Origin: Convolutriloba macropyga
Lineage: Eukaryota
Assembly (NCBI RefSeq): GCF_964194025.1
Contig: NW_027449238.1
Coordinates: 1-54,385 of the forward strand
Direction: 5' to 3'
DNA length: 54,385 nucleotides
Shown here: piece by piece, positions 6,005 to 26,132 of the stretch
Layout: each line of letters starts with the position of its first letter
Position numbering within the stretch: the first letter of the stretch is position 1
Translations under genes and position numbers: made by a program
The notes under the pieces: model-generated
Seen by the model: the letters and a program-made list of their open reading frames with translations, nothing else
The model's database searches: none
What the model was told of the DNA's origin: nothing

Positions 6005-6448
6005 CGAGGGGGAGTGTCGTGCAGGACGAGTACAGGTACTGTATGGGTACAGCATTGTGTTGTACTGATCTGTACTGGTACTCGTACTATTTTGCAGATG
6101 CGGTGCTTGTAGGGTACGATACTCGTACGTACCATACAGTACGGTACCGATATGCATGTGTGCTGCGTTGTGAGTAGTTGTACGTGTGTACTCGTACCAG
6201 TAGGGTACGTTTACATGTCGCTAATCACTCTGACTAAAGTACTGTAGGGCGAATACTGCAATCTCCGGAGATGGTGAGATTATTAGCAGTATTAGAGACC
6301 GTACGATCTACATCGGATGGTCAGGAGTGTCTGTCAGTGAAACTGCAAGTCAAGAGCCTGTAGGCTAAGTAGGATACTCAATATAAGCGAGTGCTGAAAT
6401 TGTGTAAACCATCTTGATTTGTCACACACACACTCACATACTTCAACA

Positions 6449-6982
6449 CTCTCAAAGAGAGGTGGGGGGGTAGGGTAGGGTAGAACTCATTGCTCTCCCA
6501 ATTGTTAACGGAGGGATAGTCTCAAGCAAGGTGCTGACAGACAGAGCTGTCCCTAGCACTCTCCCCTAAAAGACCCAATCTTTTCTCCCAGCGCAACGCC
6601 GAGCCACACACAGACCAGCAGCACACGGAGGACCGAGTGGAGGTGGACGACAGGGCGAGACGAGCGGCGCAAAAGGCGGTACTAGGGCGTCGTCTTCGAG
6701 AACTCTCCCAGGAGCATCTCCTACACATCCTCAAGGTCAGAAGCATAAGAATACAAGAAATAGCACAGCCGGGACCTGGCCAGCCCGGCTCCGGACCCCC
6801 TCCCAGGCCCCCTTTAAAATAACCCCTCGGGGGGCTCCCTCCTGGCCGGGTTGCCACCCCCTACCCTAAGGTTTTAAAGGCTACTAGATACGGACCACCG
6901 GCAGTGGACGTGTTAGGACGTAATGACGTCTTCATGTACCCTACACTTGTAAGGACTTCTCTCTCTCTCTCTCGCTCTACTA
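6449..6982 (+). mobile_element. 3' end of non-LTR element A, related to element B: RLE C-terminus, 3' UTR and (CT)n-CTACTA tail
   Basis: LKERWG..GRVELIALP, KRPNL and LRELSQEHLLHILKVR align with LQRRWGRVKLIGIP, KRPNL and LRSLAQEHLLHVLRAR at 19081-19400; shared 3' UTR motifs. Confidence 0.82.
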
Positions 6983-7405
6983 ATATTATAGTATATATTA
7001 TAGACGACGGGATAGCCGACAAAAACAGTAGAATCAAGTATCGTTACGGGGCCGGACCGTTGTACGCGACTAGAACATACTGATAATATACTGTATCGTT
7101 ACGCTGTGGCTCATTAGTCCCGGGTGATTCTAACGGGTACCCCGCGGCTACACTGGAGTACGCTGCACGGAGCGTCGGGGGCACAGGCGTCGTTCCACCA
7201 ACATTTGGACGGCGCGGAATACGGAAGGACGTTTAGGGGGGACTAGGGGGGCATGTTCTGGTTGGACAGGAGGGCGGTTCGTATAGTGACTTACAGAGTT
7301 GAACGCATTGGAGGCCTTTACGTTAAATGCAGCCAAGGAGTTCGGTACGCATGCCTCCTGCGCGGCCTGAATGATCCACTGGATCATATCGGTACCAACC
7401 CAACT
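6983..7405 (+). repeat. Copy 1 of a ~420-bp direct duplication (TA-rich stretch, unique segment, CRE-like RT fragment); copy 2 at 19594-20025
   Basis: gacgacgggatagccgacaaaaacagtagaatc...ccaacccaact occurs at both sites with a few substitutions and indels. Confidence 0.93.
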
Positions 7406-8375
7406 GCCAGCCGACTTTGTCACACTGGTAGGGAATTTGTATGGGGCCACCACTGCTTACCTCACAAGGTGGGGAAAAACTGGGACCATCCCGGTGAATC
7501 GAGGCACCCTGCAGGGAGACCCCCTCTCCCCTCTGCTCTTTGAACTAATGATTGAACCTCTGGTAAGATGGCTGGCTCAGGGGGGCAGAGGCTGTGCGGG
7601 ATGCTCCTCCTTCCCAGAGCACCCTAGCCAGCAAATGGTACGCAGATGATGGCACCCTAGTGGCCAACAGCCCGAGCAGCCTCCGCCTCCAACTCCAAAA
7701 GGTGGATAGGTAACGGGGAGTGGTCTGGTATACGCTGTAATGTCTCGAAATGTAGGTTGACAGGCTACGTCCACCAGCTGCAATCCCTCCCCGCTGCTGA
7801 GGCTCTGCAAGCAATTGAAGGGATGCTGGCAGATGTCACCATTGACAGCAAACGAGTCCCGGTCATTGGGCAGAATGCCCCACTCCCAGGCACTTACCTG
7901 GGCACCTGCCTCACGGCCTCACTCAGATTTTAAGGCGCATTGGCAATGGGTCCAATCTACAATCACACCAGCCTGTGAGGCGGTGGTGGGGTCCCCCGTC
8001 CCTGTCCCGATTAAACAACATATGCTCGCCTGCACCAGTAAGGCTAAACTGGCACACACGCACACTATGATGGGCCTGACAGAGGACCAAATCAGCGCCC
8101 TGGATGCCAAGCTTGCTACGTATGTCAAACGAATACACTGCCTTCCCCCGACCATGGCCACAGCGGCCGTCCACTCCCCCCAGTCCGAGCTGGGCCTCGG
8201 CTTCCCCTCTGTGAGGGAAGACTATGCTTCGGCTGCCTCCCAGATGTGGCTCTTGCTCAACGAGGGGGGGGCGTTGGGGGAGGCAGCACGGCACTCCTTT
8301 GACCGCAGCTGGCCTCAGATTTCAACCCTGGCCCGCCTCCCTAGCTTTATCTTACTGCCCGTTCCTAATGGGTAG
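7404..8375 (+). pseudogene. Non-LTR reverse transcriptase (C-terminal palm motifs and thumb), frameshifted
   Basis: LPADFVTLVGNLYG, RGTLQGDPLSPLLFELMIEPL, WYADDG (7636-7653), thumb VHSPQSELGLGFPSV. Confidence 0.92.
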
Positions 8376-9065
8376 GGTGGTGGCAGTTCTTCAGAAATTC
8401 GGGATACACACTGAAGGCCCCCCCCCCCTGTGGCGAGGCAACTCCATAGCAACCAGCTCTCACTGTTCCCCCCAGTTAGACGCCGAGGGCTGCCAGCTCC
8501 CGGACCACCCCTACCCCCCGACAAACACAATTCTAGGCCGCCTCTCACCGCTCTGGGACAGTAATGTCCTGGAGTGGCATGAGCTCTTGTATTCCCTCCC
8601 GAGCGGGCGGATAAGGGTAGTTTCCTGGCAAGAGCTAACGTCCCGGAATCCCAACCTGGTGAAGAAGACGGCGGCCCCAAAGGGCGCTGGGCTATCTCCA
8701 GGACCTCCTAACTACCGAGTCCCTGCTTCACAAAGAGGGAAGCGAACTAGTAGGAGCCTCACCCCCAACGAATACTTGGTGAGCCCTCGCTGGAGAGCTA
8801 TGCTCCCACAGGCTAGTGAACTCCCACAGGAGCCGACCCCTACCCACATTCTAGAAGCCATGGGACTGCAGCCCATCACTACTTTCTGTGTCAAGGCCGG
8901 GCCAGGGGCCGACACACGGGCTACCCGTAGTGACAGCATGCCGTCGCCTGGGCGGTCATATCAGTCTAGTGCAGTGCATAAGCGAGTCAGAAAAAGAAAA
9001 GGCAGGTGCCGAAGCTCCCCCAGGGCTGGCCCCCCCATGCAGTGCCTGAACAGTGCCCCTGGCCG

Positions 9066-9620
9066 CAAGTGGCGCAGATCACCACCCACAGAGAGGGGTG
9101 CCCTGAACCCGTGTTAGAGCCTCCCCACGGCAACACAACTGAATACTTGGTTGAATGGACCCCCTCTTACTGCAGACATATACTACAGCTCCTAGAGCAG
9201 GTAAGTGATGTGTCCTCGGATGGGGAGGCGCCTGCCACCCTCCTGCACTTCATGGAGGGGCTGAGGAACCGGTCCCCTTTGAGTTGTGCCCTTTGCGGGA
9301 ATGGCGATCACACCTCGCCACAACAAGGACTGCGGCTCTGTGTCAGGTGCCTCTGCTTGTCCCACACAGATTGTGCCCAGGCTAGGGCTGAGGCGCTGGG
9401 TGTAGCCAAGCCCACAGGTCCCAATATCTCCCAGTGGAGCTGCCCGGGCTGCCCCGCCAAAGGGAGGCGATGTCCACTCCCAGGCTTTGTTTGTTTGGTC
9501 AGCTGGGAACCATTTTGGATGGTTGGGAATGTGATAACTTCGCTCCACAAAGGCATTAAGGCCCTAGAAACCTACAATGAGAGGTACCTGACAGCCCTCT
9601 GGATGAAAAGGAGGCGCCTC
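9066..9620 (+). pseudogene. Chromo-like segment plus PHD finger of element B
   Basis: VAQITTHR..EYLVEW; C4HC3 pattern CALC..CVRC....HTDC..WSCPGC at 9285-9452; followed by SWEP. Confidence 0.7.
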
Positions 9621-12600
9621 TGTCGTGCAGGACGAGTACAGGTACTGTATGGGTACAGCATTGTGTTGTACTGATCTGTACTGGTACTCGTACTATTTTG
9701 CAGATGCGGTGCTTGTAGGGTACGATACTCGTACGTACCATACAGTACGGTACCGATATGCATGTGTGCTGCGTTGTGAGTAGTTGTACGTGTGTACTCG
9801 TACCAGTAGGGTACGTTTACATGTCGCTAATCACTCTGACTAAAGTACTGTAGGGCGAATACTGCAATCTCCGGAGATGGTGAGATTATTAGCAGTATTA
9901 GAGACCGTACGATCTACATCGGATGGTCAGGAGTGTCTGTCAGTGAAACTGCAAGTCAAGAGCCTGTAGGCTAAGTAGGATACTCAATATAAGCGAGTGC
10001 TGAAATTGTGTAAACCATCTTGATTTGTCACACACACACTCACATACTTCAACAGGTTATGGGCCCTCTACTCTCTACTACGCTATACTTCTGACTACAG
10101 CGAGACTTCTTGGAGACTTCCTGACTTCGAGACTTCCTGACTTCGAGGCTTCGAGGCTTCGAGACTTCCTGACTTCCTTCCTTCGAGCCTTCTTCTTCAG
10201 ACGTATCTTCCTGTGGAGAGCTTCGACTACGAGTGTGTGGAGCTGTCGACTTCGAGATCGAGATCGAGTGTTTTCTTGCAAGTGCTGCGAGTTGTGCAGC
10301 TGGGCAAGGAGTGGCGACGAGCACGAGACCTGCTGTCTGTGGTTACTCGTCTCCCTGTGTTTCTGGGCGGTGCTGTGTGTCGAGTGCCTGCCGATCTGTG
10401 CGCGAACCCTGCCTTGTCGGCCCTGTCGAGCGTGGAGACGTCTTTCCGAGTGGCGTTCCTGTTGCTGTTGTTCGGCCTGTTGGCAGTGGCGCTACTGTCC
10501 GTGACCGCGAGTACCTGCACGTGTTTCGGTGCCTGTCTGCTGCTCTTCGACCTATCGACCGATCTTGTTTCGTCTGCCTGATTCTCCTCGCGACATCATG
10601 GCCGAGACCGTGAAGGTGCCGACGTTTTCGGGCAAGGCCGCCGACTTTCCTGTCTTCCGAACCAAGTTCACTGCTTACGCCGACGCTCTGGGGCTCGGAG
10701 GTGTGTTGGACTGCGAGGACGACGTCACCACGGCCCAGCAGAAGCGGCTCTACAGCCTGCTGGTCCTGGCCCTGCCTGAAGCTGCCCTCCATGTCATCCG
10801 CAAGGTCGAACGCAAGTCTGTCACTGCTGGCAACGATGCGTGGGAGGCCCTGCTGCACCGCTACGAGCATGACGGCATCCACCGGCGCGGTGACCTGCTG
10901 AACGCCCTGGATGAGAAGCAGCGCCCCGAGGAGACCTGCATGGACTTCTTCAACCGCCTCGTGGATCTTCAGGCACAGCTTGGGCGAGTCGATGAGGAGG
11001 TGCCAGATCGCCGCCTGGTGATGAACATCATCCGAGGTCTGCGCCCCGAATATGCCGCCATGACCGACACCATCAACGAGAGAGACTCTGCGGTGACAGT
11101 GGAGTTCATGGAGACCCTGCTGGCTACCACTGGACAGCGCATCGAGCGCCGCCTGGGTGAGCAACGCGAGCCTAAGCCTGCTGCTACAGCGTTTCCTGCG
11201 TCTGGTGAGGAGCCCGAGGATCTGCGGAGCATGATGCAGAAGCTGAAGCAGGAGGTGGCAGCTCTGACAACCTCCAGACGCCGCAACGGGGGAGGCAGTG
11301 AGTTCAAGGGCACCTGCTGGCACTGCGGCGAGTCTGGACACCGTCGCAAGGACTGCCCCAAGAAGAGCACTCCCAGCGCCAATGCTGCGGACCTGGAGGA
11401 CTCCAAGGCTGTGGCGTTTCCTTCAGTGGCTCTGTCTGGCACGGGCTCCAAGGTGGCTTCACTGGTGCAGGGCGAGGTGGAGACCTGGATGTGGCTGGTG
11501 GACAGTGGCGCCAGTCATCACATGACCAGCGTACGCGAGGACTTCGTCGAGTTCCGACCCATTCCACAGCAGTGGGTGAAGGGCATCAGCGCCTATGCTA
11601 CAGGCATGGGATCTGTCCGACTGACGATGCGAGCCGAAGATGGGGAGGTAGTTCCTGCTATGCTGCACGACGTCTACTTCGTGCCGGACCTGGCGGCGAG
11701 AGCAATGAGCAGTCACCACCGCCTCTTCAGCGTCACCCAGGCCAGGCAGCGCGGCCATCGGATGGTGTTCGAAGATCCGTGTGATGTGCTGTGTGTGCAT
11801 GAGAGACATGGAGGCGGCATTCGAGTGCCACTGCGGCGTGACTTCGGGCTGGTGTGGCTGGCTGCTGGCATGACCACCCGCAGTGCCGACGTCTCGGCCT
11901 GTCCTGCAGCAGCCCCGCCAAGCAAGCCCCTCTGGCACCTTCGGCTTGGTCATCTGAGTGAGTCTTGCATGGACCGGATGCGGCGCGCTGGAGCTACTGG
12001 CCTGACCTTCGATGCTTCGGAGCGGTTGTGCTTCTGCGAGTCATGTGCCGTCTGCAAGTCCCGAGTGAAGGCCATTCCGCGGGAGCCGTGCGCAGATCCG
12101 GAACGTGTCTTCCAGCAGGTTGGCGTGGACTTCTGCGGGCCGATGACTGTGCCAGCGCTAGGAGGCGGGCGGTACAGCTTCTTGGTGACGGACTTCAAGT
12201 CGCGCATGCTGCTGCATGATGTTCTGCGGACCAAGGACGAGGCGCCGAGATCCTTCCGAGGTGTTCTGGACGCTGTGCGCAAGCTTGGGCACAGAGTGGA
12301 GCATGTTCGCCTGGACAATGACAGCGTGCTGCTGGGGACCGACTTCATGACGGTGCTGCAAGAGCATGACATCACCCATGACCTCATCGCGCCGTACTCA
12401 CACTGGCAGCACGGCCGTGTTGAGCGGCAGTGGGGCACCTTGGTGCCGATGGCCCTGGCGATGCTGCACACTGCAGGCCTGGAGAAGTGCTTCTGGGGCC
12501 TGGCCATGAATGCCGCCGTCCACATGCGCAACCGATCGTGGAGCGAGGCCGCTGGAGGACCGCCGCTTGAAATCGTTACCAAGTGCCCAGTGGATCTCAG

Positions 12601-15082
12601 TCGTCTGCGTGTCTTCGGGTGCCCTGCATATGTCCACATCGACAAGTCTCGTCGGCGCAAGCTGGACGACCGCGCGTGGAGAGGCATCTTTGTGGGCTAT
12701 GCTACAGACTCGCCGGTGTGGCTGGTGTACAACCCGCGAACTCGGCGAGTGGAGCGCAGCCGCAACGTGGACTTCGATGAGATGGCGCTGATGGGATCCG
12801 TCAGCGTGGGGGAGAAAGCGCCGTCTGCTAAGGACGATGACGGAGTCCCAGTGTTCTTCGAGGAGCCTGTGGAGCGCTCTGGCGGCGACACCACTTCGGG
12901 GGAGCCAACTTCGCCTTCATCTGCCTCGGGGGAGCCGAGTCAGGCAGTACAGGAGTCGGGGGAGCCAAGTCAGCCTGCTGTTGAGCTCCGCCGCAGCTCG
13001 CGCGCCAGACAGCCGCCGACTGAGTGGTGGATCAGCCAGCCTGCTGTCAACCTTGCTGCTGCTGCCGGAGCCGTCCCTCATCAGGAGCCGGCCTCGTACA
13101 AGCAAGCGCTGCGGAGCCCGCAGGCTGAGCAGTGGAAGGCTGCCATGGAGACTGAGTACGACGCGCTGACGTCGCGCAAGACTTGGAGACTGGTACCCCG
13201 ACCTGCAGGACGCAAGCTGGTGGACTCCAAGTGGGTCTACAAGCTGAAGCGCAACCCTGACGGCAGTATCGCCAGGTACAAGGCTCGGCTTGTGGCCCGT
13301 GGCTTTACCCAGGAGCACGGCGTGGACTACCAGGAGACCTTCGCCCCCACGGTGAAGGTGGCGGCCATCCGAATCATACTGGCGTTGGCAGCGCACTTCG
13401 ACTGGGATGTGGAGCAGATGGACGTGGTGACAGCCTTCCTGGAGGCCGACATCGCCGAGGACATCTACATGAGGCAGCCTGAGGGATACCGCCAAGTGGA
13501 CCAGCATGGCGACGAGCTGGTGTGCAAGGTGTTGAAGTCCATCTACGGGCTGAAGCAGGCTCCACGCAACTGGAACAAGACTGTGTCGGCGTGGTTGGTG
13601 GAGTATGGCTTCAAGCAGTCGACTGTGGACCCGTGCATCTACACCTTCGCTGCTGCTGGAGACCTCTACATCCTGGCTCTGTATGTGGACGACAGCATCA
13701 TGGCGGGACCGCCAGGCAGCTTCATCTCCGACTTCAAGCGGGCGTTTGGCAAGCGCTTCAACGTGCAAGACCTGGGGCCGGTGTCTTGGCTACTGGGCAT
13801 GACTGTGGAGCGTGACCGAGCAGCTGGAGTCCTCAAGGTGGGGCAGCGTCAGTACATCCTCGACATGCTGGAGCGCTTCAACATGTCGGACTGCAAGCCC
13901 GTCAGCACTCCCATGACCGTGGGTGCTCTGAGTGAGGCAACTGCCAGTGAAGTGCTGTCCCCAGATGTGCCGTATCAGAGTCTCATCGGGAGTCTGCTCT
14001 ACGCATCTGTCAGCACCAGGCCAGACATCACCATGGCCGTCAGCCATCTCAGCCGGTACATGGCCCGTCCTTCCACTGTACACTGGGAGCAAGCCAAGCG
14101 AGTGCTTCGGTACCTGCAGGGCACTCTGGACTGGCAGCTGGTGTATGGAGCCGGTGAGTCCACGGCGACCTTGACAGGCTACTCAGATGCTGACTTCGCT
14201 GGAGATGCAGACGGACGACGCTCTCGCACCGCCTTTGTGTTCCTGCTGAATGGCGCGGCGGTCAGCTGGAAAAGTCAGCGACAACCCACAGTGGCGCTCT
14301 CCACTGCCGAGGCGGAGTACATGGCTCTGACGGCTGCAACTCAAGAGGCTGTGTTTCTGAGGCAGCTGTTGCAGGAGATGGGGCAGCCTCCGGCATCTGG
14401 CACACTCATCCACGAGGACAACCAGAGCTGCATTGCCCTCTGCAAGAACACCATGACCACTGGCAGGAGCAAGCACATCGAGGTGAAGATGCACTTCTGT
14501 CGTGAGAAGCAGGAGAGCGGCGAGATCGTGGTTGACTACTGCCCGACTGAGGAGATGTTGGCTGATGGTCTGAGCAAGCCGCTGGCTGGAGAGAGGCACA
14601 AGAAGCTGTTCAGGAGCGTGATGGGCTCGAGTGAGTAGCGAGGGGGAGTGTCGTGCAGGACGAGTACAGGTACTGTATGGGTACAGCATTGTGTTGTACT
14701 GATCTGTACTGGTACTCGTACTATTTTGCAGATGCGGTGCTTGTAGGGTACGATACTCGTACGTACCATACAGTACGGTACCGATATGCATGTGTGCTGC
14801 GTTGTGAGTAGTTGTACGTGTGTACTCGTACCAGTAGGGTACGTTTACATGTCGCTAATCACTCTGACTAAAGTACTGTAGGGCGAATACTGCAATCTCC
14901 GGAGATGGTGAGATTATTAGCAGTATTAGAGACCGTACGATCTACATCGGATGGTCAGGAGTGTCTGTCAGTGAAACTGCAAGTCAAGAGCCTGTAGGCT
15001 AAGTAGGATACTCAATATAAGCGAGTGCTGAAATTGTGTAAACCATCTTGATTTGTCACACACACACTCACATACTTCAACA
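9621..15082 (+). mobile_element. Full-length copia copy 2 (5,462 bp); LTRs 9621-10054 and 14649-15082; 5-bp TSD GCCTC
   Basis: gcctc at 9616-9620 and 15083-15087; LTRs appear identical; PBS and PPT present. Confidence 0.98.
10598..14638 (+). CDS. Copia Gag-Pol polyprotein, intact
   Basis: Same as copy 1 except EQAKR versus EQAER. Confidence 0.97.
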   Translation: MAETVKVPTFSGKAADFPVFRTKFTAYADALGLGGVLDCEDDVTTAQQKRLYSLLVLALPEAALHVIRKVERKSVTAGNDAWEALLHRYEHDGIHRRGDLLNALDEKQRPEETCMDFFNRLVDLQAQLGRVDEEVPDRRLVMNIIRGLRPEYAAMTDTINERDSAVTVEFMETLLATTGQRIERRLGEQREPKPAATAFPASGEEPEDLRSMMQKLKQEVAALTTSRRRNGGGSEFKGTCWHCGESGHRRKDCPKKSTPSANAADLEDSKAVAFPSVALSGTGSKVASLVQGEVETWMWLVDSGASHHMTSVREDFVEFRPIPQQWVKGISAYATGMGSVRLTMRAEDGEVVPAMLHDVYFVPDLAARAMSSHHRLFSVTQARQRGHRMVFEDPCDVLCVHERHGGGIRVPLRRDFGLVWLAAGMTTRSADVSACPAAAPPSKPLWHLRLGHLSESCMDRMRRAGATGLTFDASERLCFCESCAVCKSRVKAIPREPCADPERVFQQVGVDFCGPMTVPALGGGRYSFLVTDFKSRMLLHDVLRTKDEAPRSFRGVLDAVRKLGHRVEHVRLDNDSVLLGTDFMTVLQEHDITHDLIAPYSHWQHGRVERQWGTLVPMALAMLHTAGLEKCFWGLAMNAAVHMRNRSWSEAAGGPPLEIVTKCPVDLSRLRVFGCPAYVHIDKSRRRKLDDRAWRGIFVGYATDSPVWLVYNPRTRRVERSRNVDFDEMALMGSVSVGEKAPSAKDDDGVPVFFEEPVERSGGDTTSGEPTSPSSASGEPSQAVQESGEPSQPAVELRRSSRARQPPTEWWISQPAVNLAAAAGAVPHQEPASYKQALRSPQAEQWKAAMETEYDALTSRKTWRLVPRPAGRKLVDSKWVYKLKRNPDGSIARYKARLVARGFTQEHGVDYQETFAPTVKVAAIRIILALAAHFDWDVEQMDVVTAFLEADIAEDIYMRQPEGYRQVDQHGDELVCKVLKSIYGLKQAPRNWNKTVSAWLVEYGFKQSTVDPCIYTFAAAGDLYILALYVDDSIMAGPPGSFISDFKRAFGKRFNVQDLGPVSWLLGMTVERDRAAGVLKVGQRQYILDMLERFNMSDCKPVSTPMTVGALSEATASEVLSPDVPYQSLIGSLLYASVSTRPDITMAVSHLSRYMARPSTVHWEQAKRVLRYLQGTLDWQLVYGAGESTATLTGYSDADFAGDADGRRSRTAFVFLLNGAAVSWKSQRQPTVALSTAEAEYMALTAATQEAVFLRQLLQEMGQPPASGTLIHEDNQSCIALCKNTMTTGRSKHIEVKMHFCREKQESGEIVVDYCPTEEMLADGLSKPLAGERHKKLFRSVMGSSE

Positions 15083-15479
15083 GCCTCCCAGCCCAGGGAG
15101 GCGCCTCCCCGGTGGCGGAGCGGCTTGCCCCGTCTAGGCGTGCCCCCCCCCTTGCAGGGCCAGCACATCTCCTCCCGTACGATCATTGATGCGACTGAGT
15201 TGAATCCCTCCCTCGACATACACCCCACTGGGAAGTACGCTGCCAATTCAGTCCCTGCCCTCAACCCGGTGGAGCAAGGACGAGTCAGCATTCATGACCC
15301 AGACGGCAGGGCGGTGTCCCCCTACTGCCTTTCCCTAGACAGATACCAATGGCTGTGGGCTCAGCATAGGCGACATGCCCCCCCACAGGCCGACTTCCAC
15401 CAGGACCTGGCCAGACTCTTGCGCAGATACCATCCCAGGGCAAAGACAGTGAACCCTCAGGGAGCATGCCTGGACCTGA

Positions 15480-15960
15480 AGAACCATTGGTCGTTGCAGC
15501 TCTCTCTCACCGAGGATAACCACCGCACGTTTAGCACAGAGTGCGAACTGTTCAGCAGCCCCCTGAACTGTAGCATGGGCAGGGACCTGGCATGCTGCTC
15601 CCCGTTCCAGGAAGATGCTAGGTTCGGGGCTGTGGTGAACTCGTTTGGGTATCGGTGGACTGGTTCATGTGTGGCCAACCAGGAGTATACTGCCGCGGAT
15701 ATGCGGCAGGCTATGGAGCACGCGATCCGCTCGTCAGTCTCGACGGAGAACCCTTTCCTCTGCCTGCTTGTCCTCCCGGCCTGGGATGATTCGCCATGGC
15801 GCAGCGCCGGGCTTCTCTCCCACAGGCCTGTGCGCCGCCTTTTACAAATCCCCCACGGCAGGTTCCGGTTTATACCAGCTCATATGCACAGGGGTAGACC
15901 CGGCTGCCCTCACGCCAGCTGAGTGTGCGGTAGACGTAATGCTAGTGGCCAACGACCGGG
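15480..15960 (+). pseudogene. PCIF1/CAPAM-like N6-adenine methyltransferase domain of element B
   Basis: ECELFSSPLNC..CSPFQEDARFGA..GSCVANQEY..MRQAMEH..PFLCLLVLPAW parallels PCIF1 ECFASPLNC..CSAF..FGS..GSFEANPPF..MVSH..PLSFIVFIPEW (recalled, not aligned by software). Confidence 0.82.
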
Positions 15961-16236
15961 GGATGTCTGAATACATTGACATGACCGCGCTGGAACACAC
16001 CCTGGTTCCTGCCCTACGGCATAGCTGTGCCTTTAAAGACCTACATGTTGAACTATTCCCCCCGATGCAAAATCAGGGGGAAGGTATACAGCCAAGAACC
16101 ACACGCCCAGCCCCCCTTACCGTCCCGCATGGGTCTCCACCCCCCATGCAAGGGCTTGGATGACCCCCTCTGGCCAAGAGACCCCACTCTGGAGGCATCA
16201 GCAGAGGATATACGCCCCCTCCCCCAAGATAAACCC

Positions 16237-17175
16237 TTGGTGGTGGTGGAACTGTGCGCTGGCATTGCCACGGGGCTGGAAGCCCTTCTCAGAGGGGGAC
16301 ATTACATATCGTCGTATACATGGGCGGACATCAACCCAGATGCTCACCAAGCCACTGGACACAGGCTCGCTAAACTGCAGAGGCGGTTCCCGGCACAGCT
16401 CCCCCCTACTGCGGTGGAGGGATGGGACAGGCGCATACCTTTCAACGTCAACTGCATTACCCCGGAACTGCTGAGCCCCTCTTTCCCGGACGGCATCGAC
16501 CTGGTAATAGCGGGGCCCCCCTGCCAGCCGTACTCTACCGCTGGGATACAAAAGGGGCTCGGTGACCCGAGAAGTGGAGCGCTCATAAATATGGCTCGGC
16601 TTATAAGCTATTTGCACTCCACGCAGAGGAATGGGGTTAGATATATCATTGAGAAGGTTCCGGGCACTGAGAGGCACCCAGAGGTGGCAAGAATGTTGGA
16701 CGCCCCGGTCAAGCTGGATGCCCCGCCGTGTGGGTCGGCTGCACGCCGGAAGACACTATTCTGGCAGAATCTTGCCCCTGTAGGCGAGATCCTCTCTCAA
16801 TTCAAAGCTCTCCCGCCCTTCACTGCTACAGTAAATGAGGTCCTCTCCAGGGCGGGTCTCAACAACTGGCGCTCACAGCCGCAGACCCTAGGAGTGACTT
16901 GCTTCCCCGGGGACCCATACAATGTCCCGGGGCAGCCCCAGTGAGCCATCCCCAAAATGGTGTGCTTCGAGGGCTCCCACGCTTTTCCTTTCAAAAAGAT
17001 AAGAGGGAGGACGCTGCCAGGGCCTGGCATGTTATACAAGGGCAGCGATCTCACTGAGCCCGATGCGGACGTGGCTGAGGCTCTGATGGGTTTCGTGTTA
17101 GGGGACACAGCTGCCACGGGGCTGTTGCCGGCCCAGCGCCGCCACCTCTTCGGACAGTGTATTGACATAAACCTG
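16237..17175 (+). pseudogene. C5-cytosine DNA methyltransferase domain (DNMT3-like motif style), split by one in-frame stop at 16942
   Basis: Motif I ELCAGIATG; II ADIN; IV AGPPCQPYS; VI IIEKV (ENV variant); VIII RRKTLFWQNL; IX EALMGF..DT; X RRHLFGQ. Confidence 0.9.
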
Positions 17176-17484
17176 TTTTCCTGGCTTATCGCCACTGCCT
17201 CCCCCCGCACGACCCCGATTCCCCCCGTCCTCCCGCTCGCAGCGAGACACACGGTGCCGAAGGAGCAGGCAGGCTGCTGCAGATCGCTGCGGCCCAAGAG
17301 GCGGGCCGTTGGGGAGGGGCCCCTCTGCCGTGGGACTGTATGCACCCCCTGGATGCCCCATCCTGTCCACACTCGCCATCGAAAGATGATAATGGCCCCG
17401 CCCTACCCTGGGGCCGAGGTGATCGCTCTGTTGTGCCTGCCCCCTCCCCCCCGTGCCGCCCTCTTGCCCATAATGCCTCTGCTT

Positions 17485-17885
17485 GGGTATACACAGATGG
17501 TTCCAGGAGCGAGTCGTCTTCGACACTGGGAGCGGCGGTGGTACACATGCCATCTGACACATACATAAGAGTGGCCTGCACGGGGGAGGCAGAATGTAAC
17601 ACGGGTTTCAGAGCTGAACTAGTGGGCATACATTCCTCTCTGTGTGCGTTTGAAAAGGCTGAGCACCTGTACGTCCTAAGTGACTGTGCGTCTGCCATTC
17701 AGGCGATGGAAGCCTCCCTCCTCCGCCCCCATGAGAAAGGGTACCATCATCACAGGCCCCTCCTACAAGCCATCTGCTACGGCATCGCAGACACGGACAG
17801 GAGGGGCTGGCATACGGTCATCAGAAAGGTCAGGGCTCACGTTGGAATTGAAGGGAATGACCTGGCGGACTGGCATGCTAAGTTT
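17485..17885 (+). pseudogene. Ribonuclease H domain of element B
   Basis: WVYTDGS, NTGFRAELVGI, LSDCASAI, KVRAHVGIEGNDLAD (D-E-D-D plus H). Confidence 0.93.
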
Positions 17886-18483
17886 GCGGCCAAAAACCCA
17901 TTGGGAACGGAGGAATACCACGTAAAGGTGCACACCCTGGGGGCAGTGCCGACCAGACCTAGCTACTGGCTCTTCTATGACCCCGCCAAACCTGCTGCAC
18001 ATGATCCTGGGGCTGAGGTTCTCGCAGCGCTGGCGGGGCATCCGTCCCAAAAGCGTAAATCTCCGGATGTAGGTGAGGCAGCGGACACTACCGTCCAGAA
18101 GAGGCCTTCCCCCACCCCGGCAACGGATGCCCGGCCTTCGGCCTCGCAGAAAAGGCAACTGGGAGCCGTCCATCAGCCTCCCCCTCCCGACGTAGAGCCT
18201 GAGCCTGCCCGGTATGCATTCACTGACCCGCAGAGACAGATTAGAGCTAAGGTCAGGCCCCAAGTGCTGGAGCTTACTGCTGCAACGTCCCTCTATAGAC
18301 GGTTGATAGTGGATGCCAAGCAGAGAGGGGATAGGATAGACGAGACAGCTGCAGGTGAGCTGCGACAGACAGGAAGGCAGGCACAAAGACGCCACCCGGA
18401 TCTTCAAATTTCTGTGGGGAAACCCTAAAGTACTATAATGGCAAGCTGGCTAAGAGGTATGGGCATTCGGCCAATGATAGGCG

Positions 18484-19460
18484 TGCCCTCTGCGCTTTGC
18501 CTGAGTCGTGCACTCGAATAGGGGCGGGCTGCCCTGCCCTGGCACCCCATTACCTCCTTCGCCATCAGGCCGCTGTCCAGGCGGTGCATCTGTTTATCCG
18601 AAAGAGTGAGAAGGGTGCAGGAGCCCTGTTTGGAAACCCGTGGACCCTGGTCTCATGCGACGGGGGGAGTGAGTCGACTGGGACAAGAGATATTACACTG
18701 CAGAGAATAGTGCCGGACGCTGCCGCAGCTACGCCGCCTGCAGGACCCCACAGACGCTGTGACCCTAGCCTGTGCATACAGGACTGTCTGCCGTCTCTCA
18801 GATCCTATGCTCCGCTGGCTGAATGTGCCTCCGCCCCCAGGTACCTGAATGAGTGGGTCTTGCCCCTGGGGGAGAAGCAACGCCTGATCTCTGAAGGAGC
18901 GGGGCTGGCCCCCGACATTGTGTACGCCAGGGGTGTACCCAACTTGACTCCCCCTCCCCTGCACTCCTATACCCCGCGCCAGTGCAGCCTGCTGCTGGTT
19001 GAGGTGGGATTCCGTCAAGATCTGCGGTTGCAAACGAAGGAACAGCTTAAACTGGGCAAATATGAGGCTTTGGTTCAAGCCCTACAGCGACGCTGGGGCA
19101 GGGTGAAGCTCATAGGGATCCCATAGGGATAGGAGGCACAGTGTCAGGGGAGACAGCCCAGGAGCTGCCACTGGCTTTGTGTACAAAGCGACCTAACCTA
19201 ACAGGGGCACCGGGGCCTCCCGGTGGCAGTACCACTGCAGCATCTAAGAGATCGGAACAGGGGGCGGTGAAGACGGAGTGGGCGCCAGGGCTCTGAGGGC
19301 TACGAGGAAGGGAATGCGAGGCCTGACCAAGGAGCTAAGGAGCCTGGCGCAAGAGCACCTATTACACGTCCTGCGAGCACGAGTATGTAAGCTGCTGAGC
19401 GCCGGAGACTCGGCCGGGGGAGGCACCGGGGCCCCCGCTTTAAGACCAAAAAGTAAATAA
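18484..19460 (+). pseudogene. Zinc knuckle, restriction-like PD-(D/E)xK endonuclease and C-terminus of element B
   Basis: Degenerate CxxC..(H to R)....C, RHQAAV, APDIVY, LLVEVGF..D, K..KYEAL; ORF ends ~19460. Confidence 0.8.
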
Positions 19461-19593
19461 CCGTTCGGGGAGCAGTCCCGTAGCCTGGCTGCTCCCCCGT
19501 ACGTTCTTTTAAGGCTACTAGGTACTACCCTGGTACTTAGGGCTGGGTGCTGATGTCTACATGTTCCCTGCCTAAATGCTCCTCCTCCTACTA

Positions 19594-20025
19594 TATATTA
19601 TATATAGACGACGGGATAGCCGACAAAAACAGTAGAATCAAATATCGTTACGGGGCCGGTCCGTTGTACGCGACTAGAACATACTGATAATATACTGTAT
19701 CGTTACGCTGTGGCTCATTAGTCCCGGGTGGCTCATTACTGATTCTAACGGGTACCCCGCGGCGAAACTGGAGTACGCTGCACGGAGCGTCGGGGGCACA
19801 GGCGTCGTTCCACCAACATTATGGACGGCGCGGAATACGGAAGATCATTTAGGGGGACTAGTGGGGCATGTTCTGGTTGGACAGGAGGGCGGTTCGTATA
19901 GTGTCCCGACTTACAGAGCTGAACGCATTGGAGGCCTTTACGTTAAATGCAGCCAAGGAGTTCGGTACGCATGCCTCCTGCGCGGCCTGAATGATCCACT
20001 GGATCATATCTGTGCCAACCCAACT
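19594..20025 (+). repeat. Copy 2 of the ~420-bp direct duplication flanking element B
   Basis: Matches 6983-7405. Confidence 0.93.
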
Positions 20026-21221
20026 ACGAACCGCAAATTTATGCGGACCGAACGCGTCGGCTAGTAAATCTTGTAGTAGGCAGATCGAGGCAAGGCGGAC
20101 CAGTACCATACCATACCCGATGGGACGTAGCGGTAGCCTTAGGCGGGGTCAGACTGCATGTCCACCGTGTCGGGGTCCTTCTTCAGGGGGAATTAGGGAT
20201 GTAAGCACCTAAAGGAGTTTATCACATTAGATTTTACAGGAATTGGAGGATTCGAGTGCTAAATTTATCTGTCCAGGTCGGGCACCGGCCAAGGCCGCAG
20301 CACAGCGATCATCCGCGACCAGACAGGCCAGATACTCTTACCAACTGTCCCGATAAGCAGCAGAGCGGCGGGGCTACGCCTCAATACTCTGCGAAGGGTT
20401 TCAACTACACTCTCCGGGGCAGGACGGGACTCAAAAGGCCGGGTCAGGGCTTGTCTGACGGCGAAAAAAGTAGGTGAAGGGAATCCAAGGAGTCAGTCAG
20501 GTCGCTGCAGGGGTCGGAGGGTCTGAGGCGGACGGGGCAGCGGCATCCCGAAAGAGAGAGCCTTCAGTTCTTTCTGTGTCGTCAACCCCGCAGCTCTCTG
20601 CTGCTCTGACATTCTTCCAAAGCTGCTGCGGTCTCTCCAACCTCTTCATATTGCTCGTGGACGCCCCCTCGTTACTTTTGACGGTGAGAGACCACCCTGC
20701 ACAGACGAAACCCGCACTTCTCGGCCGCTTTGACGTGAGACCGCTCCGCTGGTGCTTCCGACAAGCGCCCCTGACTGTTTCCTCTCTGACGACACTTTCC
20801 GACACGATCACGACCTCGAAAAGATCGACACGCCTCGGATCTGGTAGCTCTGGCCCCCAGCTGCTCAACACGACCGAGATTCTCAATTTTGGCCGACGGA
20901 CGGCGGAGTTCTAGCTCGTGTCCGCGGCGTAGTGGCGGTGGCGGCGCTGAGTTTAGCCTGACGACATTTCCGCCGGTCACCGCGGCCGGACGGCGCTCCG
21001 AACCTTCGCCAAATGTGCTGGAACGCATCGGAACTGGTAGCCCTGAGCTGTCCGACACGACATAGATTCTTCGTTATGGTCACCGGACGGCGGAGTTCTG
21101 ACCTGATTCCTCGGCGGTGGCGGCGGTGGCGCCGTGTTCCCCTTGCGACTACCCGCAAAGCTCTGCGGCCCGAGTGCAGCTGGAACCCATCTGGAAGCCC
21201 AGAGCGTCAGCTTCCTGACAC
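19750..21221 (-). pseudogene. Degenerate CRE/SLACS-like non-LTR RT relic; its 5' part is low-complexity and is cut by copia copy 3
   Basis: Minus strand LIP(fs)LKKD..LRPIGYGMVLVRLA..KFAV...GTDMIQW..SNAFSSVSRDTI fits CRE-clade RT motifs 1-3; extent beyond ~20300 is uncertain. Confidence 0.65.
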
Positions 21222-22206
21222 TGTCGTGCAGGACGAGTACAGGTACTGTATGGGTACTGCATTGTGTTGTACTGATCTGTACTGGTACTCGTACTAAATT
21301 GCAGATGCGGTGCTTGTAGGGTACGATACTCGTACGTACCATACAGTACGGTACCGATATGCATGTGTGCTGCGTTGGGAGTAGTTGTGTGTAGTTGTAC
21401 TCGTACCAGTAGGGTACGTTTACATGTCGCTAATCACTCTGACTAAAGTACTGTAGGGTGAATACTGCAATCTCCGGAGATGGTGAGATTATTAGCAGTA
21501 TTAGAGACCGTACGATCTACATCGGATGGTCAGGAGTGTCTGTCAGTGAAACTGCAAGTCAAGAGCCTGTAGGCTAAGTAGGATACTCAATATAAGCGGG
21601 TGCTGAAATTGTGTAAACCATCTTGATTTGTCACACACACACTCACATACTTCAGCAGGTTATGGGCCCTCTACTCTCCACTACGCTATACTTCTGACTA
21701 CAGCGAGACTTCTTGGAGACTTCCTGACTTCGAGGCTTCGAGACTTCCTGACTTCGAGGCTTCGAGACTTCCTGACTTCCTTCCTTCGAGCCTTCTTCTT
21801 CAGACGTATCTTACTGTGGAGAGCTTCGACTACGAGTGTGTGGAGCTGTCGACTTCGTGATCGAGATCGAGATCGAGTGTTTTCTTGCAAGTGCTGCGAG
21901 TTGTGCAGCTGGGCAAGGAGTGGCGACGAGCACGAGACCTGCTGTCTGTGGTTACTCGTCTGCCTGTGTTTCTGGGCGGTGCTGCGTGTCGAGTGCCTGC
22001 CGATCTGTGCGTGAACCCTGCCTTGTCGGCCCTGTCGAGCGTGGAGACGTCTTTCCGAGTGGCGTTCCTGTTGCTGTTGTTCGGCCTGTTGGCAGTGGCG
22101 CTACTGTCCGTGACCGCGAGTATATGCACGTGTTTCGGTGCCTATCTGCTGCTCTCCGACCTGTCGACCGATCTTGTTTCGTCAGCCTGATTCTCCTCGC
22201 GACATC

Positions 22207-25200
22207 ATGGCCGAGACCGTGAAGGTGCCGACGTTTTCGGGCAAGGCCGCCGACTTCCCTGTCTTCCGAACCAAGTTCACTGCTTACGCCGACGCTCTGG
22301 GGCTCGGAGGTGTGTTGGACTGCGAGGACGACGTCACCACGGCCCAGCAGAAGCGGCTCTACAGCCTGCTGGTCCTGGCCCTGCCTGAAGCTGCCCTCCA
22401 TGTCATCCGCAAGGTCGAACGCAAGTCTGTCACTGCTGGCAACGATGCGTGGGAGGCCCTGCTGCACCGCTACGAGCATGACGGCATCCACCGGCGCGGT
22501 GACCTGCTGAACGCCCTGGATGAGAAGCAGCGCCCCGAGGAGACCTGCATGGACTTCTTCAACCGCCTCGTGGATCTTCAGGCTCAACTTGGGCGAGTTG
22601 ATGAGGAGGTGCCAGATCGCCGCCTGGTGATGAACATCATCCGAGGTCTGCGCCCCGAATATGCCGCCATGACCGACACCATCAACGAGAGAGACTCTGC
22701 GGTGACAGTGGAGTTCATGGAGACCCTGCTGGCTACCACTGGACAGCGCATCGAGCGCCGCCTGGGTGAGCAACGCGAGCCTAAGCCTGCTGCTACAGCG
22801 TTTCCTGCGTCTGGTGAGGAGCCCGAGGATCTGCGGAGCATGATGCAGAAGCTGAAGCAGGAGGTGGCAGCTCTGACAACCTCCAGACGCCGCAACGGGG
22901 GAGGCATGGAGTTCAAGGGCGCCTGCTGGCACTGCGGCGAGTCTGGACACCGTCGCAAGGACTGCCCCAAGAAGAGCGCTCCCAGCGCCAATGCTGCGGA
23001 CCTGGAGGACTCCAAGGCTGTGGCGTTTCCTTCAGTGGCTCTGTCTGGCACGGGCTCCAAGTTGGCTTCACTGGTGCAGGGCGAGGTGGAGACCTGGATG
23101 TGGCTGGTGGTCAGTGGCGCCAGTCATCACATGACCAGCGTACGCGAGGACTTCGTCGAGTTCCGACCCATTCCACAGCAGTGGGTGAAGGGCATCAGCG
23201 CCTATGCTACAGGCATGGGATCTGTTCGACTTACGATGCGAGCCGAAGATGGGCAGGTGGTTCCTGCTATGCTGCACGACGTCTACTTCGTGCCGGACCT
23301 GGCGGCGAGAGCGATGAGCAGTCACCACCGCCTCTTCAGCGTCACTCAGGCCAGGCAGCGCGGCCATCGGATGGTGTTCGAGGACCCGTGTGATGTGCTG
23401 TGTGTGCATGAGAGACACGGAGGGGGCATTCGAGTGCCACTGCGGCGTGACTTCGGGCTGGTGTGGCTGGCTGCTGGCATGACCACCCGCGGTGCCGCCG
23501 TCTCGGCCTGTCCTGCAGCAGCCCCGCCAAGTAAGCCCCTCTGGCACCTTCGGCTTGGTCATCTGAGCGAGTCGTGCATGGACCGGATGCGGCGCGCTGG
23601 AGCTACTGGCCTGACCTTCGATGCTTCGGAGCGGTTGTGCTTCTGCGAGTCGTGTGCCGTCTGCAAGTCCCGAGTGAAGGCCATTCCGCGGGAGCCGTGC
23701 GCAGATCCGGAGCGTGTCTTCCAGCAGGTTGGCGTGGACTTCTGCGGGCCGATGACTGTGCCAGCGCTAGGAGGCGGGCGGTACAGCTTCTTGGTGACGG
23801 ACTTCAAGTCGCGCATGCTGCTGCATGATGTTCTGCGGACCAAGGACGAGGCGCCGAGATCCTTCCGAGGTGTTCTGGACGCTGTGCGCAAGCTTGGGCA
23901 CAGAGTGGGGCATGTTCGCCTGGACAATGACAGCGTGCTGCTGGGGACCGACTTCATGACGGTGCTGCAGGAGCATGACATCACCCATGACCTCATCGCG
24001 CCGTACTCACACTGGCAGCACGGCCGAGTGGAGCGTCAGTGGGGCACCTTGGTGCCGATGGCCCTGGCGATGCTGCACACTGCAGGCCTGGAGAAGTGCT
24101 TCTGGGGCCTGGCCATGAATGCCGCCGTCCACATGCGCAACCGATCTTGGAGCGAGGCCGCTGGAGGACCGCCGCTTGAACTCGTGACCAAGTGCCCAGT
24201 GGATCTCAGCCGTCTGCGTGTCTTCGGGTGCCCTGCATATGTCCACATCGACAAGTCTCGTCGGCGCAAGCTGGACGACCGCGCGTGGAAAGGCATCTTT
24301 GTGGGCTATGCTGCAGACTCGCCGGTGTGGCTGGTGTACAACCCGCGAACTCGGCGAGTGGAGCGCAGCCGCAACTTGGACTTCGATGAGATGGCGCTGA
24401 TGGGATCCGTCAGCGTGGGGGAGAAAGCGCCGTCTGCTAAGGACGATGACGGAGTCCCAGTGTTCTTCGAGGAGCCTAGGGAGCGCTCTGGCGGCGACAC
24501 CGATTCGGGGGAGCCAACTTCGCCTTCATCTGCCTCGGGGGAGCCAAGTCAGGCACTACAGGAGTCGGGGGAGCCAAGTCAGCCTGCTGGTGAGCTCCGC
24601 CGCAGCTCGCGCGCCAGACAGCCGCCGACTGAGTGGTGGATCAGCCAGCCTGCTGTCAACCTTGCTGCTGCTGCCGGAGCCGTCCCTCATCAGGAGCCGG
24701 CCTCGTACAAGCAAGCGCTGCGGAGCCCGCAGGCTGATCAGTGGAAGGCTGCCATGGAGACTGAGTACGACGCGCTGACGTCGCGCAAGACTTGGCGACT
24801 GGTTCCCCGACCTGCAGGACGCAAGCTGGTGGACTCCAAGTGGGTCTACAAGCTGAAGCGCAACCCTGACGGCAGTATCGCCAGGTACAAGGCTCGGCTT
24901 GTGGCCCGTGGCTTCACCCAGGAGCACGGCGTGGACTACCAGGAGACCTTTGCCCCCACGGTGAAGGTGGCGGCCATCCGAATCATCCTGGCGTTGGCGG
25001 CACACTTCGACTGGGATGTGGAGCAGATGGACGTGGTGACAGCCTTCCTGGAGGCCGACATCGCCGAGGACATCTACATGAGGCAGCCTGAGGGATACCG
25101 CCAAGTGGACCAGCATAGCGAGGAGCTGGTGTGCAAGGTGTTGAAGTCCATCTACGGGCTGAAGCAGGCTCCACGCAACTGGAACAAGACTGTGTCGGCG

Positions 25201-26132
25201 TGGTTGGTGGAGTATGGCTTCAAGCAGTCGACTGTGGACCCGTGGATCTACACCTTCGCTGCTGGTGGAGACCTCTACATCCTGGCTCTGTATGTGGACG
25301 ACAGCATCATGGCGGGACCGCCAGGCAGCTTCATCTCCGACTTCAAGCGGGCGTTTGGCAAGCGCTTCAACGTGCAAGACCTGGGGCCGGTGTCTTGGCT
25401 ACTGGGCATGACCGTGGAGCGTGACCGAGCAGCTGGAGTCCTCAAGGTGGGGCAGCGTCAGTACATCCTCGACATGCTGGAGCGCTTCAACATGTCGGAC
25501 TGCAAGCCCGTCAGCACTCCCATGACTGTGGGTGCTCTGAGTGAGGCAACTGCCAGTGAAGTGCTGTCCCCAGATGTGCCGTATCAGAGTCTCATCGGGA
25601 GTCTGCTCTACGCATCAGTCAGCACCAGGCCAGACATCACCATGGCCGTCAGCCATCTCAGCCGGTACATGGCTTGTCCTTCCACTGTACACTGGGAGCA
25701 AGCCAAGCGAGTGCTTCGGTACCTGCAGGGCACTCTAGACTGGCAGCTGGTGTATGGAGCCGATGAGTCCACGGCGACCTTGACAGGCTACTCAGATGCT
25801 GACTTCGCTGGAGATGCAGACGGACGACGCTCTCGCACCGCCTTCGTGTTCCTGCTGAATGGCGCGGCGGTCAGCTGGAAAAGTCAGCGGCAACCCACAG
25901 TGGCGCTCTCCACTGCCGAGGCGGAGTACATGGCTCTGACGGCTGCAACTCAAGAGGCTGTGTTTCTGAGGCAGCTGTTGCAGGAGATGGGGCAGCCTCC
26001 AGCATCTGGCACACTCATCCACGAGGACAACCAGAGCTGCATTGCCCTCTGCAAGAACACCATGACCACTGGCAGGAGCAAGCACATCGAGGTGAAGATG
26101 CACTTCTGTCGTGAGAAGCAGGAGAGCGGCGA
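22207..26132 (+). pseudogene. Copia Gag-Pol of copy 3: protease DSG changed to VSG, and RNase H tail separated by the insertion (remainder 35910-36024)
   Basis: WLVVSGAS; ...KQESG then transposon then EIVVDYCP...GSSE stop. Confidence 0.93.

Follow-up and report, generated by a model that had tools for sequence, protein, structure and literature searches.

The stretch of DNA analysed here comprises 54,385 nucleotides of contig NW_027449238.1 (positions 1 to 54,385, forward strand) in the Convolutriloba macropyga assembly GCF_964194025.1 and is referred to as the window. A decayed methyltransferase domain of the PCIF1/CAPAM type lies at 15088–16064 on its plus strand. The domain is part of the second open reading frame (ORF2) of a 5'-truncated retrotransposon without long terminal repeats (non-LTR), or long interspersed nuclear element (LINE), which occupies 7414–9620 and 15088–19602 and is split by a Ty1/copia element (Table 1). 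An initial annotation had placed a PCIF1-type domain at 15480–15960. The domain is indeed located there, but its true extent is longer, and its final ~60 residues are read in a different frame, past a frameshift at 15880–15891. The frame-2 reading stops with ...RFRFIPA at 15880, and homology resumes with GVDPAALTPAE in frame 0 at 15891. The apparent start of the ORF at 15053 is inside the copia 3' LTR, which ends with the element at 15082 and is followed by GCCTC at 15083–15087.

The Pfam profile PCIF1_WW (PF12237) matches the window copy with 43.8 bits (E = 2.7e-11, profile positions 6–146 of 176), against a curated cut-off of 31.1 bits, and a scan of the genome with this profile recovers the same spot. 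The intact copy on contig C1707, the closest relative in the assembly, gives 48.7 bits, also above the cut-off, and the window domain shares 75–78% amino acid identity and 73% DNA identity with it. The four spaced blocks of the PCIF1 core and the NQEY tetrad at 15677–15688, both pointed out in the initial annotation, are found in the frame of ORF 15053–15922. Judged from the sequence, these blocks and the tetrad are real and far beyond chance.

A tblastn search of the C1707 ORF2 against the window matches residues 1633–2377 to 7404–9617 (45–78% identity, in several frames) and residues 2387–3813 to 15119–19442, and the window copy is thus collinear with its intact relative. The collinearity and the intact ORF2s described below establish the polyprotein context of the domain, as expected from its earlier placement inside a retroelement. 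Downstream of the PCIF1-type domain, the cytosine methyltransferase (DNMT) and RNase H matches are on the same strand, each in another frame. The 5' truncation falls inside the reverse transcriptase (RT), and at least six frame changes are present, one of them within the methyltransferase domain. The DNMT domain retains the ELCAGIATG and GPPCQPYS motifs; it has an in-frame stop at 16942–16944 and reads IIEKVPG instead of IIENVPG (EKV for ENV). The tetrad NQEY is, as first described, one substitution (P to Q) away from NPEY, which is found in every intact relative. It is a decay mutation, since all five intact copies and 111 of 143 public cluster representatives read NPEY. With its 5' truncation, the copia insertion, the frameshifts and the altered catalytic motif, the window copy is non-functional.

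The copia element that splits ORF2 encodes an intact polyprotein, has two identical LTRs of 435 bp (9621–10055 and 14649–15082) and is flanked by a 5-bp target-site duplication, GCCTC (9616–9620 and 15083–15087), and these features point to a very recent insertion. A DIRS element was also considered as the host of the domain. This candidate was rejected, as the domain has no PF05869 match at E ≤ 1 and the element is a LINE rather than a DIRS element with a tyrosine recombinase and split repeats. The LINE copy is bracketed by a direct duplication of ~415–430 bp (6999–7413 and 19603–20033, 95–98% identical). This repeat may be a long target duplication or may reflect more than one insertion at an identical 3'-end sequence. 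Just upstream of the bracketed copy, at 6445–6753, lies the C-terminal end of another LINE ORF2, which is 40% identical.

Table 1. Features of the interrupted LINE copy in the window (nucleotide positions) and of ORF2 of its closest intact relative, C1707 (amino acid positions).
Feature	Location	Strand	Remarks
Window: upstream half of the LINE copy	7414–9620	+	ORF2 from the RT (~aa 1633 of C1707) through the post-RT and chromo/PHD-like region
Window: chromo-like/PHD-like reader region, just 5' of the methyltransferase	8982–9617	+	C1707 aa 2167–2377; weak PHD matches, ORF 9006–9674
Window: Ty1/copia insertion in LINE ORF2, not LINE-derived	9621–15082	+	1369-aa gag–protease–integrase–RT–RNase H ORF, 10529–14638
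Window: LKNHWS	15476–15493	+	Frame of ORF 15053–15922
Window: ECELFSSPLN block	15539–15568	+	Aligns to CAPAM ECFASPLN (6IRV)
Window: EDARFGA block, PCIF1 D..FG(A/S) motif	15611–15631	+	Aligned to CAPAM D..FGS
Window: catalytic-loop tetrad NQEY	15677–15688	+	Mutated NPEY; equivalent to NPPF 553–556 of human CAPAM
Window: LLVLPAWDDSPW	15764–15799	+	Frame of ORF 15053–15922
Window: frameshift within the methyltransferase domain	15881–15890	+	Frame 2 to ~15880, frame 0 from ~15891
Window: DNMT3-like C5 cytosine methyltransferase domain, decayed	16237–17175	+	PF00145 match
Window: RNase H domain	17481–17891	+	PF00075, E = 5.8e-10, aa 48–184 of ORF 17340–18428
Window: C-terminal region, homologous to the CCHC and restriction-like-endonuclease-like tail of C1707	18428–19442	+	tblastn, C1707 aa 3490–3813; several frame changes
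Window: LINE 3' untranslated tail	19443–19602	+	ORF2 match stops at 19442; duplicated flank starts after the tail
C1707 ORF2: Exo_endo_phos	aa 894–1132		Weak, 19.1 bits, E = 0.0012, cut-off 24.5 bits; profile 2–225 of 225
C1707 ORF2: RVT_1	aa 1530–1752		95.8 bits
C1707 ORF2: PCIF1_WW	aa ~2385–2705		
C1707 ORF2: DNA_methylase, then RNase_H	3' of the PCIF1 domain		RNase_H 46.7 bits
C1707 ORF2: CCHC knuckle and PD...E.K-like motif	C-terminal tail		CPLCSLPDSCTHIGAGC and PDIVY...EVGYCQD; by eye

A six-frame protein search of the assembly recovered seven more copies of the element, five of them in very long open frames, with intact ORF2 lengths of 3815, 3626, 5061, 2665 and 2487 aa. The C1707 copy combines the 3815-aa ORF2 with a 938-aa ORF1, in which no Pfam match was found. 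In intact ORF2s, the Pfam matches follow the order Exo_endo_phos (weak), RVT_1, PCIF1_WW, DNA_methylase and RNase_H. The complete layout is an apurinic (AP)-like endonuclease (APE), RT, a split chromo-like region with or without a PHD finger, the PCIF1-like domain, a DNMT3-like domain, RNase H, and a tail with a CCHC knuckle and a restriction-like endonuclease (RLE)-like motif. The Exo_endo_phos match is likewise weak in the family member P0064. For the CCHC and RLE-like motifs, the C-terminal 336 aa of C1707 gave nothing against the PDB sequences and no Pfam match. In the C1707 DNMT domain, the ELCAGIATG, PPCQPYS and ENV motifs are intact, and its best PDB sequence matches are DNMT3A and DNMT3B. 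The RT is of the non-LTR type and is followed by an RNase H in the same ORF, as in Dualen/RandI elements. Since two endonucleases and an RNase H in one giant ORF constitute the Dualen/RandI layout, the family is best described, from its sequence, as Dualen-like. Dualen/RandI elements are the dual-endonuclease LINEs reportedly described by Kojima and Fujiwara in 2005.

The identity of the PCIF1-type domain was examined with solved and predicted structures. A phmmer search of the intact domain against the PDB sequences returns only human and zebrafish CAPAM (E = 6e-7 for 6IRV, and 5e-6), and the alignment pairs ELFSSPLN with ECFASPLN, D..FGA with D..FGS, and ANPEY with ANPPF. An AlphaFold2 model of the C1707 orthologue of the domain, built on 51 aligned homologues, has a mean pLDDT of 93.2 and a pTM of 0.89. 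Against the PDB, Foldseek matches this model to six CAPAM entries (E = 1e-12 to 5e-11), with the next match at 1e-3. The comparison with human CAPAM, which had been suggested together with the initial annotation, gives a VIA-align Z score of 21.6 for model residues 22–288 against CAPAM residues 417–668 (6IRW; rmsd 2.9 Å, 235 aligned residues), while the runners-up (KsgA/Dim1, Erm, METTL5, CamA, RlmJ and M.TaqI) reach Z scores of at most 9.1. Among the 30 matches listed from the AFDB, the clusters have PCIF1-family names or no name. The proposed PCIF1/CAPAM-type fold is thus borne out by the profile, by the sequence comparison with solved structures and by the predicted structure.

The initial annotation had also stated that this fold differs from the Dam-like methyltransferase of DIRS elements, and this distinction holds. 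For the domain, neither the window copy nor the C1707 ORF2 gave a PF05869 match at E ≤ 1. In the ESM Atlas, the TM-score is 0.70 with PCIF1 clusters and 0.45–0.49 with clusters of phage and bacterial Dam (PF05869) and of mollusc and chordate RT polyproteins of the DIRS type. Based on the model, the domain is a PCIF1-family catalytic domain, and the Dam-like family is a separate one, although it is the next structural neighbour of the domain.

CAPAM consists of a WW domain, a linker, a helical domain and a catalytic domain (PMC8287941, PMC10544176). The last two of these hold the m7G cap between them, and full activity requires the helical domain (PMC8287941). The counterpart of CAPAM in the LINE is limited to human residues 417–668, which cover the tail of the helical domain (final ~60 residues), the region of the active-site loop and the complete catalytic domain. 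Residues ~174–416 of the crystallised CAPAM core, which form most of the helical domain, are without a counterpart. A search of both halves of the 3815-aa ORF2 at E ≤ 1 gave no match to the N-terminal WW domain, which in PCIF1 binds the RNA polymerase II CTD, and neither alignment nor a 631-residue model revealed a CAPAM-like helical domain upstream. This model includes 330 upstream residues and shows disorder, a beta-rich region and a linker, followed by the domain. With respect to function, the description cap-m6Am-type (N6,2'-O-dimethyladenosine) therefore goes too far for a domain that lacks WW and the greater part of the helical region with which CAPAM binds the cap.

The sequence upstream of the PCIF1-like domain is either variable between copies or chromo/PHD-like. 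Most family members have in common a bipartite signature, Y.V.W.P...hL...GY ... V.W.P.WEP, in this region. The corresponding split chromo-like beta-barrel signature is located at aa ~2190–2350 of the C1707 ORF2 (minus strand), with equivalents in P0003, P0026, P0064 and P0070. A profile of the chromo-like segment matches, among the PDB sequences, only chromodomain chains (CDYL, CDY1, MPP8, Chp1, CBX1/5/7 and LHP1) or the chromo-like region of PHF19, with marginal E-values (best 0.0077). In several members, a PHD finger is found between the two chromo-like halves, with 28.5 bits in P0003 and weaker matches elsewhere. The whole chromo-like/PHD region has been lost in C4596 and C333. These matches suggest that the upstream segment is probably a split chromodomain.

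The conservation of the domain was assessed in genomic copies and in public data. The tetrad NPEY is present in five of five intact genomic copies, whose mutual identity is 40–67%, and in 111 of the 143 public cluster representatives that cover the site; most of the exceptions are one residue off. NPEY is thus the consensus motif across copies, the determination of which had been suggested with the initial annotation. Among the 51 aligned domains, the four positions are kept in 45 (N), 47 (P), 46 (E) and 47 (Y) cases. Among the 143 representatives, conservation of the ExFASPLN and DxxFGA blocks exceeds 90%. The E, F, S, P, L and N of the ECELFSSPLN block are each kept in at least 126 of ~135 representatives, and the D, F and G of the EDARFGA block in 140, 141 and 137 of 143, respectively. 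We take the ECELFSSPLN block to be the motif-I-like cofactor-binding region of N6-adenine methyltransferases. The dN/dS ratios among the genomic copies are 0.06–0.19 where computable, although these values are rough, as dS is saturated. The sequence data argue that the cofactor-binding blocks and the N-P-E-Y loop are under purifying selection.

A profile of six genomic copies was searched against 1.84 billion representatives at 50% identity and yielded 1054 proteins at E ≤ 1e-3, 405 at E ≤ 1e-10 and 67 at E ≤ 1e-30. In all long matches examined, an RT is located 5' and an RNase H 3' of the PCIF1-like domain, and a DNMT is present only in the nearest group. The precomputed Pfam matches of P0064 and P0003 show the same RT–PCIF1–RNase H order. 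Free-standing enzymes were considered among the short public matches and rejected, as these are fragments on short contigs, one of them with an RNase H following. A link to giant viruses was also considered; a scan of IMG/VR with the domain alignment gave 28 pattern matches, none of which was confirmed, and no relative was found there.

The pairwise distances of RT and methyltransferase in the 18 elements with both domains are strongly correlated (Mantel r = 0.96, a value reached by 0 of 5000 permutations). We read this as vertical inheritance: the common ancestor of these LINEs already had the PCIF1-like domain, which was then passed on with the RT. All eight elements with a DNMT fall into a single group on the RT tree (support 100/99), and the DNMT3-like domain is accordingly read as a single, later addition in a sub-lineage. 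A cellular PCIF1 gene is found on a contig of 59% GC (C2565:15744–16253), where a 117-nt GT..AG intron immediately precedes the canonical NPPF; it is presumably the cap methyltransferase of the source organism itself. This gene matches the profile of the LINE domain with only 18.8 bits. Because it has introns, reads NPPF and is so distant from the LINE profile, the LINE domain is, on these comparisons, not a recent capture from the host.

The source of the window differs from the main component of the assembly. The chromosome-scale contigs C1 and C5 (89 and 78 Mb) have 31–33% GC and an observed/expected (o/e) CpG ratio of ~0.9. The window has 57% GC and a CpG o/e of 0.73, and all LINE-bearing contigs (among C142, C1707, C4007, C4596, C333 and C2229) have 50–57% GC and a CpG o/e of 0.60–0.74. 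Since the window, the LINE contigs and C2565 are GC-rich and CpG-depleted in comparison with the chromosome-scale contigs, their composition assigns the window to a second, GC-rich eukaryote co-assembled with the AT-rich animal. This second eukaryote is probably CpG-methylating. It is a minor component of the assembly, and the copy counts in the assembly (eight protein-level and three DNA-level matches) are therefore little informative. The neighbours in the ESM Atlas have loose haptophyte, chlorophyte and giant-virus labels. A search of the assembly for the 21-nt spliced-leader pattern of dinoflagellates found nothing, which argues only weakly against a dinoflagellate origin, given that little of the GC-rich organism seems to be assembled.

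These observations show that the window contains a decayed domain of a dead Dualen-like LINE, and we think it likely that the intact copies encode an active adenine-N6 methyltransferase working in cis. The enzyme of the intact copies would be a methyltransferase dependent on S-adenosylmethionine (SAM), most likely active, and would act on the nucleic acid held by the ORF2 ribonucleoprotein of the element during target-primed reverse transcription. Its substrate could be the new cDNA, the RNA:DNA hybrid or the target DNA, yielding N6-methyladenine (6mA) and, where DNMT3 adjoins, also 5-methylcytosine (5mC). This choice of substrate is possible, somewhat below an even chance. It is favoured by the loss of the cap-recognition parts and by the flanking chromo/PHD and RNase H domains, and, in one sub-lineage, by a DNMT3 domain, which must act on DNA. 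A further point in its favour is that DIRS and LTR elements with Dam-type domains set a precedent, as their insertions are enriched in 6mA (bioRxiv 10.64898/2026.05.21.726589). The RNA of the element as the substrate is a tentative option, within which a true cap-adjacent m6Am activity takes a small part. It is favoured because every characterised PCIF1-family member is an RNA-cap enzyme and because RNA N6-adenine methyltransferases make up the majority of the next structural neighbours. The remaining ones, CamA and M.TaqI, are DNA adenine methyltransferases with similar Z scores.

Several points weigh against an active enzyme in a Dualen-like element that modifies DNA. The stretch was found in no RNA run. 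The APE match is below the Pfam cut-off and the RLE was recognised by eye. The chromo-like assignment comes from sub-threshold matches, and the saturation of dS makes the dN/dS ratios rough. The N-P-E-Y tetrad departs from the canonical (D/N)PP(Y/F/W), with E at position 3, as judged from the aligned sequences. As the characterised PCIF1 members all act on RNA caps, a DNA substrate would need a switch. In addition, Iyer et al. 2016 (PMC4738411) considered the PCIF1-clade domains of DIRS1 to be inactive. Their argument for DIRS1 and the departure of the motif from the canonical form, with its glutamate, are the reasons why an absence of catalysis, which we regard as doubtful, is given some weight.

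One alternative is that the module is dead as an enzyme and has been retained because it binds RNA or protein or serves as a structural spacer that separates RT from RNase H. In its favour, glutamate takes the place of the canonical second proline in the whole family, and Drosophila PCIF1 is a retained but inactive homologue. For the PCIF1-clade domains of DIRS1, the same case was made by Iyer et al. (PMC4738411). However, the residues expected to bind SAM and to catalyse are the most conserved columns among sequences that share 22–45% identity. A role in binding alone would not need the N, P and Y of the loop, yet ~80–90% of the representatives keep them. A dead module is thus considered unlikely.

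A true CAPAM-like cap enzyme, which would place m6Am on the mRNA of the LINE itself and thereby stabilise it or aid its translation, is quite unlikely. In its favour, the cap-specific CAPAM enzymes are its nearest relatives in sequence and in fold. The model also retains the final ~60 helical-domain residues, the region of the active-site loop and the entire catalytic domain (human 417–668), and the ORF2 proteins of LINEs bind in cis to the RNA that encodes them. On the other hand, the WW domain is absent, and in place of most of the helical domain (~174–416) there are a beta-rich chromo/PHD region and disorder, whereas the cap pocket and the full activity of CAPAM need the helical domain (PMC8287941). 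Finally, the domain could be an accident of the locus, such as a host PCIF1 exon beside a transposon, a single transduction event or a motif matched by chance, as the fragmentary window copy and the start of its apparent ORF in a copia LTR might suggest. This has a practically negligible probability and is already refuted: numerous public polyproteins and single giant ORFs on five or more other contigs contain the domain in frame, it co-diverges with the RT, and it is only distantly related to the intron-containing cellular PCIF1 of the assembly.

The LINE domain with its preferred reading, a cis-acting adenine-N6 methyltransferase, can be compared with several known systems. With cellular PCIF1/CAPAM (PDB 6IRV–6IS0), it shares the catalytic fold, the ExFASPLN and D..FG blocks, the position of the loop, and the N, the first P and the aromatic residue of the tetrad. 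It differs in that WW and the bulk of the helical domain are missing, and in having NPEY rather than NPPF. Cellular PCIF1/CAPAM is a free nuclear protein, whereas the LINE domain is set between the RT and the RNase H of ORF2. Dualen/RandI elements have in common with the present family a giant single ORF, RT, RNase H and extra enzyme domains, and putatively an AP-like endonuclease (below the cut-off here) and a CCHC and RLE-like tail (recognised by eye here). However, the Dualen descriptions examined mention no PCIF1-type or DNMT domain. The cryptophyte Dualen-1_GCr, with 5287 aa, has a SET methyltransferase and a C48 peptidase (PMC5029228), and this SET domain was the only result of a literature search for Dualen elements with a methyltransferase.

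DIRS elements and the DAM-LTR "EpiLTR" elements (PF05869) also encode an adenine-N6 methyltransferase in pol, some together with a C5 DNMT and a chromodomain. They differ from the present family in the Pfam family of the enzyme and in the element class, as the LINE uses target-primed reverse transcription. Iyer et al. 2016 (PMC4738411) assigned the methyltransferase domain of DIRS1 to the PCIF1 clade. SymbioLINE-Dnmt of the Symbiodiniaceae is, like the present family, a LINE encoding a C5 cytosine methyltransferase. Its DNMT, of an orphan lineage, is located in ORF1, 5' of the RT ORF, and a SymbioDIRS-Dnmt3 has also been described (PMC5890265). In contrast, the DNMT3-like domain of the present LINE is in ORF2, 3' of the RT and beside the PCIF1-like domain. 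De Mendoza et al. 2018 (PMC5890265) make no mention of PCIF1.

A PCIF1-like methyltransferase in a retrotransposon is not new as a concept (PMC4738411, from 2016), and retrotransposon-encoded nucleic-acid methyltransferases are known. In the literature searched for PCIF1-type domains in retroelements, only the paper of Iyer et al. was relevant, and none pairs PCIF1_WW/PF12237 with a reverse transcriptase. A conserved and apparently intact PCIF1-type domain as a regular component of a LINE ORF2, beside chromo/PHD and DNMT3 domains, appears to be undescribed in the sources covered, with most subscription journals and Repbase outside the search.

The retroelements known to encode nucleic-acid methyltransferases of their own, a recent theme that includes DIRS elements with Dam-like domains, the DNMT elements of Symbiodiniaceae and Klebsormidium, and DAM-LTRs, suggest that elements write their own epigenetic marks. 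The present family adds another class of element, LINEs, with integration through target-primed reverse transcription, and another enzyme lineage, PCIF1, which is known only as an mRNA-cap enzyme. It also adds a large spread, with hundreds of diverged clusters in public data. We tentatively propose that a widespread clade of Dualen-like LINEs has carried an active PCIF1-derived enzyme since its origin, which has lost the cap apparatus and would place 6mA on the cDNA or at the insertion site of the element, or modify its RNA, and which in one sub-lineage would act jointly with DNMT3 and chromo/PHD readers. If this holds, it would be the first enzyme of the PCIF1 family to use a substrate other than the cap and the first adenine methyltransferase encoded by a LINE, and the family would be a LINE counterpart of the "EpiLTR" epigenetic toolkit. 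With a domain of ~300 residues, a confident fold and natural intact copies, the action of a PCIF1-type enzyme on DNA, hybrids and internal RNA is directly testable. The result also bears on the disputed origin of the DIRS methyltransferase, for which the PCIF1 clade and prokaryotic Dam have been put forward.

Other mobile-element sequences are found elsewhere in the window. A decayed Dam-like PF05869 fragment with an in-frame TGA is present at 37109–37393 (+); it scores 30.4 bits and is the sole such match in the assembly. No RT or recombinase that would indicate a DIRS context was found in its neighbouring ORFs. At least two further copies of the same copia family are present, with ORFs at 22138–26235 (+) and 28707–32816 (-), and solo or partial copies of the copia LTR are located at ~77–1458, 6015–6486 and 36035–36506. 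Between the two copia copies, at 26332–28377 (+), lies a 681-aa ORF which was described in the initial annotation as a RAG1-like transposase.

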